Positions 29,847 to 45,600 of a DNA stretch of 64,000 bases are shown one piece after another. Within the stretch, counting starts at the first letter, position 1; each line of letters begins with the position of its first letter. The stretch comes from Piromyces finnis finn. Taxonomy: Eukaryota; Fungi; Neocallimastigomycota. The translations under genes and the position numbers were made by a program. Location: contig MCFH01000050.1 in NCBI GenBank assembly GCA_002104945.1, positions 1 to 64,000 of the forward strand. The letters are read 5' to 3'. The notes below the pieces were generated by a model. It made no database searches, was not told where the DNA came from, and saw only the letters and a list, made by a program, of their open reading frames with translations.

Positions 29847-30224
29847 GCAGAAAATGCTTACTATATAAGCATAAACTTTTTCTAAATCAAAAAAAAAAAA
29901 AAAAAAAATATTGTTGTAATTATCAAGAAAAATTAACATAATAAAAAAATTAAAACATAATAAAAATAATTAATAATTAAAAATAATTATTTTAACTAAT
30001 AGCATTAATAGCATTATATTATTAACCATCAATAAACATTTTTTCAAAAATAAAAATAACAAAAATAAAGTAAAAATATATAAAGGAAAAAACTAAATAA
30101 ACAATATCATTAAAAAAATAAATAAATAAAAAAAAATAAAAAATAAATAAATAAATAAAAATAAAACTACTAATATATTTAATATTTATATTATTTATTA
30201 GTTTGTTAAAATGAGAAAATAATA

Positions 30225-30467
<243 letters not shown>

Positions 30468-30682
30468 TAATATCATGAAATAGAATTAAAAGTAATAGAA
30501 TAAAAGAATAAGGATTAAGTTCAAAGTTATAAATTACGTTATAATACATATCATAATTTTAATGTAATTAAAAAAGTATGATTATTGGTAGTTCAAAAAT
30601 TTTTAAATTTTATTTTTTTTTTTTTTTATTTTTTAAATTTTGTGCTATTTTTATAAATTAATATTAATAATATTAAAACAAT

Positions 30683-31465
30683 ATGGCTAAATCAAGGTTT
30701 GAATATGTTAAAGGATTTGAAAACCATCCAATACTTCTCCCAAATACTTATATAGCTGTTCGTATTGATGGTAGAGGTTTTCACCAATTTTCAAAAGAAC
30801 ATAATTTTACAAAACCAAATGATGTTAGAGCTCTTAATTTAATGAATCAATGTGCTAAATCTGTTATGGAAGAATATACTGATATCGTAATTGGTTATGG
30901 GGAAAGTGATGAATTTAGTTTTATAATTTCAAAAAATTCTCAATTATATAAAAGAAGAGAATCCAAAATAATAAGTTGTATAGTTTCAAGATTTTCTTCT
31001 TCTTATGTATTTTATTGGAAAGATTTTATGGGTGATGTTTCTTTAAAATATCCTCCAGTTTTTGATGGTAGAGCTGTTTGTTATCCATCATTAGAAAATA
31101 TTAGAGATTATTTATCTTGGCGTCAAGCTGATACCCATATTAATAATTTATATAATACCTGTTTTTGGTTAATGGTTCAAGATCCTAGTCAAAAGTATAA
31201 ATCTGAAAAAGAAGTCGAAAATATTTTAAAGGATACCAATTCATCTCAAAAGAATGAACTTTTATTTTCTCAATATAATGTCAATTATGCTAAACTTCCA
31301 GAACAATTCCGTAAAGGTTCAGTTTTATATTCTGATAAAAGAAATGTTACAGAAATTGGTAAGAATGGTAAAGAAGTTGTTCGTTCAAGAAGAGTTATTG
31401 TTATTGATCATTGTGATATTATTGGTAAAGAATTTTGGGAAAAACACCCACATATTTTGAAATAA
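30683..31465 (+). CDS. THG1: tRNA(His) guanylyltransferase (intronless)
   Basis: MAKSRFEYVKGFE, RIDGRGFH, YGESDEFSF, RRESKI, FDGRAVCYP, YLSWRQADTHINNLYNT, KNELLF..NY..LP..FRKGS, DIIG..FW. Confidence 0.97.
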   Translation: MAKSRFEYVKGFENHPILLPNTYIAVRIDGRGFHQFSKEHNFTKPNDVRALNLMNQCAKSVMEEYTDIVIGYGESDEFSFIISKNSQLYKRRESKIISCIVSRFSSSYVFYWKDFMGDVSLKYPPVFDGRAVCYPSLENIRDYLSWRQADTHINNLYNTCFWLMVQDPSQKYKSEKEVENILKDTNSSQKNELLFSQYNVNYAKLPEQFRKGSVLYSDKRNVTEIGKNGKEVVRSRRVIVIDHCDIIGKEFWEKHPHILK

Positions 31466-34813: not shown

Positions 34814-37800
34814 ATGGCAAAAAAAATAAATTTTAAATATTATTTTACATTATGTTTTATAACGAGTTATATAATATTTATTACAATATTAACATTAAAG
34901 GCTATACCAAATAAAAACTCGAATAACGACTTAGAGGGTATTAGATTATTTGATTTAATATTAACAATATAAATAAATATTTTTATTCATTCTTATTTTA
35001 ACGAAATTGTTTTTATAATAAATATAGGAGAATTACTGAAAAGAGATGATATTTCATATGATCTAAATGATATATATAATTCAGAAGAAAAATCAAAATA
35101 TTACAAACCGGATGATTATGGAAAAAATATAGTGAATGGACAATTTGCATTCATTCATATAATATGGGCTTCAATAGCTTCAGGTTTCAGAGCAATGTAT
35201 TCAATTTCTAAAAATGATTTAATTAGAATATCCGAAAGCGATTTTAAAAATCCTTCTGGAATTGTCCAAACCGCTTTAAATACTAAAGGATTAGTTGTAT
35301 ATATTAATTTATTATAATTTATATATTAATCATTAGTAATAGTTGTTATTTATATATATACATACATTGTGAATTGAAAATATAATTTATTAAAATATAT
35401 ATTATTATAATTATTATAATATAGTTATTATTTGTTGTTTTAGCTCTATTTGCTGTTTTCGCTTTATTACTAAATATAGTTTGCTTCCCATTATATATAT
35501 GCATTAATATATGTACAAAAACAAGATATACAACAAAAAATTATAAGAAAAGTAAAATATTGTGTGGAAGAATATTTTTTGGAATATTTAGTTTTCTTTT
35601 AACGTATGAAAGAACTTTAAATATTAAAATAATATCTATTATATATTATATAACTAAAAGTTCTTAAATTATATAAATATATTTAATCATTAAACATATA
35701 TAGTTTTTCTCCATTATTTGCATTGATGGGTTATCAATCAATTAGTAATTCAGTTGATACAATAACAAAGGGAAGCAAAACATTAATTTATGATATAGAT
35801 GAATTTGTTATTAATGCAGAAGATGGTAAATTATCAATAGTTAAAATTGGAAATAATTCGTAAATAAAAATAATAATATATTTTTCATTTTAAACTTTAG
35901 TGATTAAAAATAAAGCTACTAATATCGTCATTGATACTGTTCGTGGTAAATTTTAATATGAATTATTAAAAAAAAAAAAGAAAAACAAAAAACTATAAAA
36001 AAAAATTAAAATTAGAAATAAATTTATTATTAAATTAATGGTGTTGATTAAAAAAAAACTTTTTTTTATATTTTAATAGCTGAAGTAGTGGATCCAATTA
36101 AATATGAAATTGATATAAAAATCATTCAAAATGCCACTGTTATGTATGATAAGGCATTGGATACAATCAATGAAGTAATTCCTTTCATAAACGAAGTCAA
36201 AAATATTGTTTATGAAGATGGCTATCCAGTTATTAATAGTAAATATTTTATATTAATTGCTTTTTTAAACATTTATACATTTATATAAAATATAAAAATA
36301 TAATTCATAAAATGTAGTAATTATTGCTGATAAAATTAAAATTATTACAAAATCTCGAATAATTTATTAAATGCCAAAAGAGCTGTACAATTTAATTCAA
36401 GAATTAGAAGTTGATTATAACCAAGATCTTAGCAAATTAGAAACAGATGTTTTTGAAAAAAATACTACATTAAATGATGTATTAAATACACTTAATGAAT
36501 TTGAATCAGTAATGAGTGATACTAAACAAACATTAGATGATAATAATATACATGAAATATATAATAAAGCATTAAATACTATTGATGATGCATTTAAAAT
36601 GGGTAAATATTAATATATTAAACTTTATTTTAATTAAAAACAAATAAATCATATCAGTCATACTAACTAAATTTTATAAATGTATTAGTTGATGAATTTA
36701 CTTCTGAATTTACAAATATAGATTTATCAGATATTAGAACTATACTTCATGATGATGTTTATAATACAATCAATGACATTGAAGGATATAAAAGTGATAT
36801 AGATATCTTTAGCCCAAATTTATTTTATAAAACTTTATTTTTAATAATTACACTATTATCTGTGATTGTAATTTTATTTGCTATTTTAAGATTACATAAA
36901 GGAGTAAAAACGTAAATATAAAAAATATTTTATATTATTAATAATATTTTTTGATTATTAATGAAATAAAAATTAATTGTTTAGATTATTAATAACATGC
37001 ATACCTATTGGAGCTATTTTCTGGATTATTACAAGTATTAAAAATAAATTATAATAATTTTTTGCAATAACCGACTCATATATATACAATATTATAATTA
37101 AATATAATAACATAATATATTTATTAAATATAATAAACAAATAAATGAAAATGAATAGTTATATTTTTATTAATATCTGTATTGGTAAGCCAGACATGTA
37201 ATACAATCTACGAATTAGATTCAGAGACAGTTGCAACTATATATAAAAAAGTTGAAACTATATATGGAAATATAGAACAAAAGGAAAATGATGAAATATT
37301 AAATTCATTATCAAATTATAATTTTAAATTTGAAACTTTTTCAAAGCTGATATATTCATGTGCATCTGATAAAAATAATGATACTTCCATATGGAGTGTT
37401 CTTGAAAAAGAGGAATTTAACAGTTTAATAAAGACTACATGTAGTATTATTGAAGAAAATATTCAATTAGAAGAAATAAAAATTGAGTGCTCAGAGGTTA
37501 ATGGAAGAGATGATTTAATTAAGTCATTTGTTAAGGCTATTAATATAACAGGGAAAATAAGTGAAGAAGTTGATAAGATTGATATTTCTGAAATGTAATG
37601 AAGAACTATTTAAATTGTTATATATGTACACATTAAATTATCACTAAATTTCTGATAAAATTTATATATATATATATAAATGTATTTAAAATAAAAAGTT
37701 TGAGTGGAATAACTGATATACCAGAAATACCAACTGAAATTGAAATACCAGAAATCTCTATTGAAAGTTTAAAGAGTTCATTAAATGAAATTACGAGCAA

Positions 37801-39188
37801 CATAGATACAATTTGTCTTGGTTTAACATATAAAAATGGGTTTAAGCCACCATCAGGTAGATATTTTTTATTATATATTATTATAAGTAATTACCTGTGA
37901 TAATTAGTCTAAATTATAAAATGTTGAATTTTTAATATACATATTTATAATTATTAGCATGTACCGAGGAAAAGAAAGAAGAAAAAAAGATATACTATAA
38001 TAGTCAAGTAGAAGATATCAATAACCGCGTAAATAAATTAGATCAAAAGCTTCAAAGCAAAAAAGATGATATGGAGAACAAACTCATACCAAATATTGAA
38101 GTAAGTGATATATTTATATTTATTAGTTATATGAGTTTTGTATGAAGATAAATAATCAAACATTTTAACAATGACATATATTTAAAACCTAATAGAAAAT
38201 TAGTGATGAATTAAAAGAATTTTTAAATAATATTGGTGAGACAGCTCAAAATATTATTGATAGTTCAATAAATTCGGTAAATAAATCAATTTTTTTTATT
38301 ATTTTTATTATTGTAAAACTTACATTAGGAACTGATATTTTTAATAAAATAAAATAGATTAAAGCAAAAGAATTTAGTTTATTTAGCTCAATTATTGATA
38401 AAACCTTTTCTTTAGCTACAAAATGTCAATCGTGGAGTCAAGATATTTGGATATTGTCAAATTCTGTTTGTCATGGTATTCCGTAAGTATTATTATTATT
38501 ATAATGATAAATGTAATTGTTACAATTTCTCAAACATTATATATATAGAAATGGAATAGATGTAATATGGTGGTCATCTGTTATTATTGCGTTTTTATTA
38601 ACGTTTAATATATTTGGTGGAATTCAGTTAATGACTTATACTGTTGCAGCTCTTAAATATGATGGTAAAGATGTGGAAAGTGATAAAAAAAGTAGACCTG
38701 ATAAAAAAGTATCGATTAATGAAAAGCAATCAGGAAAGTCTAGAAGTGATGCATGTACAAGTGAAGGCTTACCACCTCAAAAAGATGTACTCAAAACTAA
38801 TGTTCTTGATGATTTTAATAATATCAGTAAATATAATGTTGAACTTGATGATGAAAATGTAGATAAAAAAAGAAATGATTTGAATAAAGAAGTTCTTAAA
38901 AAGCATGAATCAATGATTACTCCATCTAAAGAATTAAACGAATTATTAGAAAATGGTCCTAAGTCCAATTATCATCCAGATCCAATATTTAATAATAATG
39001 AAGATGAGATAAAAGAAGTAGAAGATAGTGATGATGATATTGACAATGAAAGAGTAGAGATAGAAGTGATAAATGATGATGATGATGAGGTAGTAGAAAT
39101 AGATGTAGTAAATGATAATGATGATATAGTAGAAATAGATGTAACAAATAATGATAATAATGACAATGATGATAATTTATATCAATAA
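34814..39188 (+). CDS. Prominin-like pentaspan membrane glycoprotein (~1000 aa, ~14 exons)
   Basis: Hand-spliced ORF: signal peptide, ~100-aa ectodomain, TM1 + Cys-rich loop (CFPLYICINIC) + TM2, ~250-aa helical loop, TM3 and TM4 (..VSQTC), ~300-aa loop, KC..SVCHGIPNGIDVIWW, TM5, acidic tail. Confidence 0.72.
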
Positions 39189-42685: not shown

Positions 42686-45600
42686 GAAAATTAATTATGA
42701 TAGCTATGAATTTTCAAAACTGTTCGGTATATTGTTGTGAATGCGAAGATTATATTTATGATATAGAATTTGAAAAAATATATAAAATGGAACAAGATAA
42801 GTTTTACCAATTACTTTTACAGTCCCAAAGTAAATATTGCATTTTAAAGGAAATATATATATATTTTAAAATATTTCATTACCTAATTATTTTTTTTTTC
42901 TTTTAATTTTATTATTGCTTATTGCTATTTATAGATCCGAATATTAAGTATTTAAATTGTCCTGAATGGCTACCAACAGAAGATGAGGCTGAAAAAATAA
43001 GAAATAATTCATTACTTTTGAGATGTTCAGGTCTAAGGGGTTTACGAAACTTAGGATCGACATGCTTTATGAATGTTATTATACAATCTTTCATTCACAA
43101 TCCTTTACTTCGTGCTCATTTTTTGGGTGATCGTCATAATTATAAACTATGTAAAAATACATTATGCTTAGCATGTGAATTGGATAAATTATTTGCGCAG
43201 GTTAATCAACTATTAAAAAATATACTAATCAATATATATATGTATATATAGTACTCAAATATATAATTTTATTTTAAAAATAGTTTTATTCCGGTGATCA
43301 TACTCCTTTTGGACCATGCGAATTTCTTTATGTTGTATGGAAAACGGAAAAACATATGGCAGGATATCAACAACAAGATGCTCATGAATTTTTAATTTGT
43401 GCATTAGATCAATTACATCAAAGTTGTTGTATGTGTAAGTATTGAAATAAAAAGAAAAAATATATAAAATTTTAAAGTTTTGATCAAATCATTATTTTAA
43501 ATAATATTTTGGTTGCTATTATTATTATTATTATTATTATTATTCATTATTTATTATTGATTTATGAATGATAAATAGTAAAGAATAGAGATGATTCTTC
43601 AAAATGCAAATGCATTATACATCAAATTTTTTCCGGTTCTTTGAGATCTGATGTTACATGTACTAAATGCGGAACAGTGTCAGTTAAAGAAGATCTTTTT
43701 ATGGATTTATCGTTAGATATTAAAGATTCATCAATAAAAAAACCAAGCAGAAAACGTAAACATAAAAAAGATATAGATAATGATCATAACGATACCGATG
43801 ATTCAGTGGCAAATGAAGGTGAATATGTGTCATCATTGAACTCATCATTGAATGATGAATCGATAATAACACTTGCTGACTGTTTAAATAGGTATATAAA
43901 ATAGTTGTAGTAATATATAGTTAAATACTTAATATTTTTTTTTTTTTTTTTTTTTTTAAATTCAGTATTATTTATAAATTTTATATATATATATTTTCTT
44001 TATTTTAAATAGATTTACAATACCAGAAAAAATAAGTGAAAAATATATGTGTACAAATTGCAATTCATATCAAGTAATATTATTTAAATAGAGTTTCTTT
44101 TAAAATATCTATAAAATAATTTTAAAGAAATTAATATAGAAAATTTAATTTAAATGTTTTTTTTTTTAATAGGATGCTACAAAACAACTATCACTTAAAA
44201 CATTACCACCAGTATTATGTATATCATTAAAAGTAAGAATCAATATTAATAATAATAACATATTCTTTTTTTATATTAATATAACAAATACTCATAATTT
44301 ATTATTAATTATTATTAATAAGCGTTTTGAACATTCTCATATAACAAAAACAAAAATTGAAACTATGATTAAGATACCATGTGAACTTGATTTAACACCT
44401 TACACTTCACCTTCAATCATAGAGAATTCAAAAAGAGAAAAATATAATGAAGCCCATCCAAATAAAAAAATAGAAAGGTAAGTATAGAATATTTATTAAA
44501 ATAGTTTTTTTGTTAAATAAAAGTTAATAATTAATAAATATATTAAATAATTCATATGTTATTCGAATTTTCTTTTAAAAAAAATTGAAATATAATATTA
44601 GTGTTCCATTAAATCCAATTAATGTTTATCAATTATTTGCAGTAACAGTACATAATGGTGGTCTTGAAACAGGTCATTATACAGCATATGTAAAATGTCA
44701 TGGAGAAGTAAGTTTTATATAATTATATTATCATTAATATTTTATAATAAATATTTAAATTAAATATAATGTAGTGGTTTAAATTTGATGATCAAACGAT
44801 TACTTTAGCAACTGAGCAAGAAGTTTTAGCTAGCAATGTGTAATTGTTAAATAAATTGTTATTTTTTTTTTTAAAAAAATTATAGTAAATGATTAAAGTA
44901 TTATTAATCAAATACATATTACATATTTTTTTATAATTAGATATATGTGCTTTTATATTAGGAATGTAATGAATTATGGATCAATAGAAGATTCAGGAAT
45001 GATTCCAATTAATACTCCCAAATCTAAATTAGAAAATGAAAAATCCGAAAAGGCTCTTGCAAAAGAAAGGGAAAGAGAAGAAAAAGCTGCTCTAAAAAAA
45101 GCTAAAAAACTTAAAAAAGAAGCTGAAGCTCAAGCTAAAAAAAGAAAAAATAACCAATTACTATCAGATTCACCATCAAAAACTAAACATATTAAAATAA
45201 CGAACAGTGAAAGTAAAGAAAAATCAATTCATAAGCTTTCAAAAACTGAAAAATCTCTATCGAAAATAAGTAAACATAGTAAATATTTTTACATTTAATA
45301 GTAATGATTTTAACTATATAACAATGTAATTATCAATAATATTAAATATTATCCTATATATATATATATATATTTTTTTTTTTCAATATATAATTTTTAA
45401 AAGGTTCAAATGGTGGAAAAACTTTACCAAAAATTAAAAAAGATTATATTTCAAATAGTATTATATCAGATGATGATGATGAAGAAACCTATACAGTATT
45501 AGCTAGTGGTAAAGGTAGTTATACTTCTGAAGTTATTGGTAGTGGTTATAGTAACGGATCAATTCATAAATCTACTGGAGGTAAAGTTAAACCAGGCTCA

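Follow-up and report, generated by a model that had tools for sequence, protein, structure and literature searches.

A probable, very divergent prominin/Tweety-like pentaspan protein gene in the gut fungus Piromyces finnis

The window considered here is a stretch of 64,000 nucleotides (nt) from Piromyces finnis (contig MCFH01000050.1, positions 1 to 64,000 of the forward strand), and its subject is a single gene of 15 exons on the + strand at window positions 34814-39188, whose product is, with a probability of roughly 0.6, a pentaspan plasma-membrane glycoprotein of 990 amino acids (aa) belonging to the prominin/Tweety (TTYH) superfamily as a very divergent member. A sequence-only reading of the window, made without database searches, had proposed a fungal prominin/tweety-family protein at this place. 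That proposal is partly supported, by the architecture of the protein, by its neighbourhood in a protein language model and by a sub-significant structural ranking, but not by sequence profiles; because the profile test fails, membership in the superfamily is probable rather than demonstrated.

The gene and its exons

Three-frame reading combined with a search for phase-consistent GT-AG introns resolves the locus into 15 exons. That they would splice into one open reading frame (ORF) had been anticipated and holds, while the earlier estimate of about 14 exons was one short. The coding sequence comprises 2973 nt (990 codons plus TAA), the exon phases are consistent, and the introns, all of the GT-AG type, measure 66-142 nt. 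The window is very AT-rich (GC content 0.11-0.26), with a GC content of 0.255 in the exons of the gene versus 0.125 in its introns. The locus is single-copy in its own genome, of which 56.46 Mb in 232 contigs were searched (the window lies on the contig labelled C179 in that search). Two acceptors of the 15-exon model were corrected against the annotated P. finnis protein and the orthologues. The public model of the same locus is BCR36DRAFT_303120 (P0011; 704 aa), and the orthologue from Anaeromyces robustus is BCR32DRAFT_327297 (P0005; 971 aa); both are referred to in the following list of exons, in which TM1 to TM5 are the transmembrane (TM) helices.

34814..34937, + strand: exon 1, ATG and a signal peptide that covers about aa 1-30 (nt 34814-34903; KD15 2.27), identical to residues 1-41 of BCR36DRAFT_303120
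35031..35296, + strand: exon 2, the N-terminal ectodomain, including the conserved hydrophobic motif F-x-F-I-H-x-x-W-x-x-I-A-S-G-F-R, a substring of BCR36DRAFT_303120 that tiles residues 42-123 of BCR32DRAFT_327297
35425..35603, + strand: exon 3, TM1 (about 35428-35505), Cys-rich cytoplasmic loop and first half of TM2, with 4 Cys within or after TM1 (KD15 3.28), a substring of BCR36DRAFT_303120
35704..35825, + strand: exon 4, completing TM2 and opening extracellular loop 1
35901..35945, + strand: exon 5 (45 nt), extracellular loop 1
36080..36238, + strand: exon 6, a helical stretch of extracellular loop 1 that contains an NAT sequon
36381..36602, + strand: exon 7, a helical stretch of extracellular loop 1 that contains an NTT sequon
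36689..36911, + strand: exon 8, last part of loop 1 followed by TM3 at 36820-36888 (KD15 3.30)
36985..37034, + strand: exon 9, first part of TM4
37159..37594, + strand: exon 10 (144 aa), which completes TM4 (to about 37187) and supplies the opening 135 aa of extracellular loop 2, a part that holds 4 conserved Cys and 2 sequons
37699..37856, + strand: exon 11, extracellular loop 2 with the first Cys of a conserved Cys pair; acceptor 37699 as in BCR36DRAFT_303120
37958..38100, + strand: exon 12, extracellular loop 2, followed by a GTAAGT donor at 38101
38196..38276, + strand: exon 13, extracellular loop 2, tiling residues 699-722 of BCR32DRAFT_327297; absent from the annotated model
38358..38482, + strand: exon 14, last part of loop 2, including an invariant C-x14-C at 38424-38471; absent from the annotated model
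38549..39188, + strand: exon 15, TM5 (38562-38639) opening with an invariant WW, an acidic cytoplasmic tail of about 180 aa, and the stop; absent from the annotated model

A tandem acceptor (AG-GAG) lies before exon 2, at 35028/35031, with its two sites one codon (Gly) apart, and the annotation takes 35031. The acceptor context of exon 7 is weak (AAAAG), yet the same junction is used in BCR36DRAFT_303120. Four sequencing runs from one organism, whose nature as RNA is presumed by guess, cover a share of 0.48-0.57 of the 31-mers sampled from the stretch; the share expected is 0.58 for the exons of the full model and about 0.405 for the truncated annotation, so that the observed share would fit the full model.

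Public annotation and orthologues

The public annotation of the P. finnis gene is truncated and mis-spliced. BCR36DRAFT_303120 contains exact copies of the peptides encoded by exons 1-10 and by exon 11 up to its 40th codon; it then departs from exon 11 at 37819, rejoins at 37978 (skipping 37820-37977), reads across the GTAAGT donor at 38101 and ends inside the intron at a TGA (38143-38145). Without exons 13-15, the annotated protein has no last Cys pair, no TM5 and no tail, and a correction would matter in practice, as a protein short of TM5 and the tail is misclassified by TM counting or clustering. The earlier remark that the gene is easy to overlook does not stand in that form, since the gene is annotated, though as a hypothetical protein in truncated form.

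All 15 exon peptides tile BCR32DRAFT_327297 in order (residues 1-964), and a second orthologue, from Joint Genome Institute (JGI) data (P0010; 1018 aa), is also colinear with the window gene. P0010 is encoded without interruption on intronless JGI contigs of 3.2-3.4 kb from four samples (L008-L011), including a 1045-aa ORF with Met and signal peptide at L008:173-3310; on these cDNA-like contigs the whole protein is therefore carried by one mRNA-like molecule in a relative. Identity of the window protein to these two gut-fungal sequences is 43-50% over the full length. The part encoded by exon 14 shares 66-76% identity with three orthologues, and that encoded by exon 15 shares 49-53% with the orthologue tails, with the core of TM5 invariant. 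The Cys pair of exons 11 and 12, spaced by x13 in the window protein and as C-x11-20-C in the orthologues, is encoded solely by the longer exon 11/12 junction and is kept in the orthologues. Taken together, these comparisons support the 990-aa model over the 704-aa annotation.

Protein architecture

The architecture was read from hydropathy, Cys and sequon maps of the exon peptides and of BCR32DRAFT_327297, P0010 and BCR36DRAFT_303120. From the N-terminus, the protein consists of a signal peptide, an ectodomain of about 100 aa, TM1-TM2, a loop of about 220 aa, TM3-TM4, a loop of about 300 aa, TM5, and an acidic tail of about 180 aa. The signal peptide and the five TM helices in a 2+2+1 pattern reproduce the prominin topology, and the helices fall at the same places in both of the AlphaFold2 models described below. 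The short cytoplasmic loops measure about 30 aa (TM1-TM2, Cys-rich) and about 12 aa (TM3-TM4). Four sequons are present in the window protein, two in each large loop, versus ten in BCR32DRAFT_327297. Loop 2 holds eight conserved Cys, and a Cys follows directly after TM4. The WW at the start of TM5, 10 residues past the C-x14-C, is invariant in the window protein, BCR32DRAFT_327297 and P0010.

What the sequence-only reading had described is recognizable in these maps, with small corrections. The signal peptide, the ectodomain with GQFAFIHIIW, TM1 with its Cys-rich loop and TM2, TM3/TM4 followed by Cys, and a second loop of about 300 aa (with 8 Cys and 2 sequons) are all present, and the count of five TM helices, on which the proposal depended, is confirmed by hydropathy. 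The first loop is helical and carries sequons (two), as had been stated, but is nearer 220 than 250 aa long; similarly, the Cys pair before TM5, the WW and the acidic tail were correctly read, while the spacing of the pair is C-x14-C and not x13.

Because the sequons and the eight conserved Cys are located in the large loops, both loops would face outward together with the N-terminus, leaving the Cys-rich short loop and the acidic tail in the cytoplasm. The tail (window 38640-39185) contains motifs conserved in three gut-fungal species (KDV(L/I)KTNV..D.NNISK, PS..(L/F)..LL..GPKSNY.PD..FN and a C-terminal YQ); no Pfam family matched them, and they may represent sorting or partner-binding sites. 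Both the gene and its five-pass layout are genuine, and they are conserved in Neocallimastigomycota.

Evidence on superfamily membership

The neighbourhood of the gut-fungal proteins in a protein language model lends soft support to a place in the prominin/Tweety superfamily. In a comparison of ESM-Atlas features, the 100 clusters nearest to BCR32DRAFT_327297 comprise 23 Prominin, 23 Tweety and 54 unnamed clusters, the best Prominin cluster scoring 0.94 (213/256 features in common), and the 100 clusters nearest to BCR36DRAFT_303120:1-655 comprise 24 Prominin, 21 Tweety and 55 unnamed ones. No named family other than Prominin (PF05478) and Tweety (PF04906) occurs among the 100 nearest clusters of either protein. 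The own-model search of the ESM-Atlas gave no meaningful match for BCR32DRAFT_327297 or BCR36DRAFT_303120.

Structural modelling points in the same direction. Two AlphaFold2 models were built (P0005:31-865 and P0010:1-790, each from a 12-row alignment), and both are poor overall, with predicted local distance difference test (pLDDT) values of 54 and 59, a predicted template modelling (pTM) score of 0.42, and TM helices below 50. The long hairpins of both loops are confidently modelled in each (pLDDT 80-92), and as modelled they would pack into one antiparallel four-helix bundle atop the TM domain, an arrangement as in TTYH structures. When the two low-confidence models were compared by Foldseek with 350,542 PDB chains, nothing was found at E<=1e-3 for either; below significance, chains of TTYH1/2/3 occupied ranks 2, 4, 5, 6, 8, 10, 11, 12 and 15 for the first model and ranks 1, 2, 4, 8, 11, 15 and 27 for the second. 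TTYH is thus the best-ranked PDB family for both models, with the longest VIA alignments. The combined AlphaFold and Foldseek comparison that had been suggested as a check thereby placed TTYH at the top, but at scores below significance and from models of low confidence.

Several results weigh against membership, and they come mainly from sequence. A profile match to prominin or Tweety, named beforehand as a check, was not obtained with hidden Markov model (HMM) profiles whose curated cut-offs are 34.3 bits for PF05478 and 31.8 bits for PF04906. At E<=10, neither profile matched the 13 exon peptides searched (sub-threshold noise only), nor BCR32DRAFT_327297, P0010 and BCR36DRAFT_303120, whole or in parts; in six-frame searches of the genome at the same threshold, PF05478 found nothing at this locus and PF04906 found nothing anywhere. 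A phmmer search with exon 10 against 1.84 billion representative proteins recovered six relatives (BCR32DRAFT_327297 among them), all gut-fungal, and otherwise only low-complexity noise; word-index searches with BCR32DRAFT_327297 and with the family alignment returned three proteins, again all gut-fungal, namely BCR32DRAFT_327297, P0010 and BCR36DRAFT_303120. Against PDB sequences, phmmer and hmmsearch missed TTYH and matched only designed coiled coils, and the Atlas fold search returned nothing. Topology and composition, instead of descent, may account for the language-model neighbours. In addition, loop 1 (about 220 aa) and the first cytoplasmic loop (about 30 aa) miss the thresholds of >300 aa and <25 aa used for prominins by Bell et al. 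2024 (PMC11405016).

By sequence, then, relatives are visible only in gut fungi; a metagenome scan with the family alignment gave 596 pattern matches, of which 0 were confirmed. Some apparent matches were set aside. Four overlapping PF05478 matches of 12-21 bits (profile positions ~170-410) fall within a repetitive 1733-aa ORF elsewhere in the genome (C155:387391-389418), and they were rejected as coiled-coil noise because 4/14 bacterial and archaeal control genomes also give PF05478 matches. Three phmmer matches (P0007-P0009) are HAMP-repeat or low-complexity proteins and not relatives.

Alternative explanations

The protein could be a lineage-specific gut-fungal pentaspan glycoprotein that converged on the prominin layout, having no common ancestry with prominin or TTYH and a function possibly unrelated to curvature. 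The lack of any HMM or pairwise link to a prominin or Tweety, the confinement of the relatives found to Neocallimastigomycota, and structural matches that lie below significance in the range of generic helical bundles all speak for convergence. It is nonetheless regarded as unlikely, given that, for each of two different proteins, every named cluster among the nearest 100 (45-46 of them) belongs to Prominin or Tweety, that TTYH ranks first among PDB families for both models, and that the agreement extends beyond TM count to the Cys right after TM4, the Cys pair before TM5 and, putatively, the Trp at the outer end of TM5.

An improbable account of function is that of a cell-surface sensor or receptor, in which the four-helix bundle binds a ligand (cf. 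bacterial chemoreceptor and TorS-type sensor domains) and the acidic tail signals, with no membrane shaping. Conserved short motifs and the C-terminal YQ in the tail would suit such a role, but no Pfam signalling domain was detected there, and the account is a rival on function that is compatible with prominin ancestry. Finally, it is very improbable that two or more genes were joined by over-reading (e.g., with one starting at the ATG at 36371, or with TM5 and the tail encoded by a 3' gene of their own). The annotated model does stop before exons 13-15, and the in-frame ATG at 36371 does lie just after a stop; however, that same model joins across 36371, BCR32DRAFT_327297 and the cDNA-like contigs L008-L011 hold the whole protein in one ORF, the 15 exon peptides tile BCR32DRAFT_327297 in order, and the 31-mer share in the probable RNA runs fits the full model. 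The orthologues' single ORFs and the in-order tiling thus bear out the single gene of the sequence-only reading, which had named a split of the locus into separate genes as a possible refutation.

Proposed function and significance

If the protein is a divergent member of the prominin/Tweety superfamily, this pentaspan protein with a type-I start would, by analogy with prominin-1 and TTYH1, sit in, stabilise or induce highly curved plasma membrane or shed vesicles. It might act through its TM domain and through contacts with lipids close to the two conserved Trp residues where TM5 meets the outer face, with the rigid extracellular four-helix bundle standing above the lipid-interacting TM domain, and the lineage-specific tail (with the KDVLKTNV..NNISK and GPKSNY.PD motifs) could recruit cytoplasmic partners. 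The function of prominin-1 is tied to cholesterol (PMC11405016), and Neocallimastigomycota have no sterol synthesis and contain tetrahymanol instead (PMC7440791). Because tetrahymanol takes the place of sterols in these fungi, any lipid partner of the P. finnis protein would not be cholesterol.

The fuller proposal, in which the protein is a true membrane shaper of the prominin superfamily, present as a single copy in a sterol-free lineage with tetrahymanol and having gained a long conserved acidic tail, is tentative and possible rather than likely. If true, it would provide a natural experiment on the cholesterol dependence of prominin-type membrane bending and vesicle release, and the protein could mark a specific curved membrane in anaerobic gut fungi (e.g., the zoospore flagellum, rhizoid tips or shed vesicles). 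If homology alone holds, the superfamily would reach Neocallimastigomycota at a divergence invisible to Pfam profiles, and family profiles would undercount prominins outside animals. General reports of prominins in fungi already exist, so such a finding would be an extension rather than a surprise, and its added interest derives from the sterol-free host.

Neighbouring genes

The neighbours of the prominin-like gene are ordinary. Upstream, an intronless 260-aa ORF at 30683-31465 (+ strand) is a complete tRNA-His guanylyltransferase (Thg1 5.9e-54, Thg1C 1e-36), and just upstream of it, at 30022-30549, lies a long simple repeat of the trinucleotide type that reads, on the minus strand, as a run of about 70 codons for Ile or Leu. 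Downstream, an exon-sized ORF at 42922-43251 (+ strand) carries the N-terminal Cys-box of ubiquitin C-terminal hydrolase (UCH, 6.1e-10) and is a piece of a larger multi-exon gene.

Comparison with known systems

Prominin-1 was linked to TTYH by HHpred (Hori et al. 2019; PMC6828804), and prominin and TTYH have been treated as one broader family inducing extracellular vesicles (Bell et al. 2024; PMC11405016). The earlier statement that prominins are chiefly studied in animals needs qualification, as putative prominins have been reported in fungi, excavates, SAR and plants (Bell et al. 2024; PMC11405016). Gut fungi are unnamed in the text and supplements of that study, and a paper on the gut-fungal membrane proteome mentions no prominins. 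With the non-metazoan prominins of Bell et al., the window protein shares the qualitative definition (five TM helices in a 2+2+1 pattern, with two large extracellular and two small intracellular loops); the BLAST or InterPro homology to annotated metazoan prominins that was required of them is not found in it.

With TTYH1-3 (PF04906; PDB 7P5J, 7P5M, 7P5C, 7RTT and 9G71), the gut-fungal proteins have in common the five TM helices and the extracellular four-helix bundle with one hairpin contributed by each loop (on the gut-fungal side modelled at low overall confidence), and Tweety clusters are among their nearest language-model neighbours. They differ in the absence of a PF04906 match, in an ectodomain that is not compact, and in the length of the loops, which are about 120 aa in TTYH (PMC11405016) versus about 220 and 300 aa here.

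Differences from prominin-1/CD133 (PF05478) are likewise clear: there is no PF05478 match and no pairwise similarity to the gut-fungal protein, the gut-fungal tail is about 180 aa long, acidic and furnished with conserved motifs of its own, and a function tied to cholesterol stands against a host with tetrahymanol and no sterols. Common to both are the signal peptide, the five TM helices in a 2+2+1 pattern with the N-terminus outside and the C-terminus inside, and two large helical extracellular loops of prominin-like size, glycosylated in prominin-1 and predicted to be so here. As further leads, PROM1 also has a hydrophobic segment in its N-terminal ectodomain and a Cys-rich stretch after TM1, and it resembles the window protein in the Cys after TM4 and in how far the last Cys stands from the Trp. 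In prominins, a Trp (human Trp-795) is nearly universal at the outer end of TM5 (PMC11405016), and the invariant WW of the gut-fungal proteins is a candidate equivalent. Both proteins carry a Cys pair just ahead of TM5, and among the named clusters those of Prominin are the best language-model neighbours of the gut-fungal proteins. The two gut-fungal orthologues, BCR32DRAFT_327297 and the JGI protein, are annotated merely as hypothetical, with no Pfam domain recorded, and differ from the window protein in tail length; they have the same TM pattern, the same eight Cys in loop 2, and the same TM5 and tail motifs.

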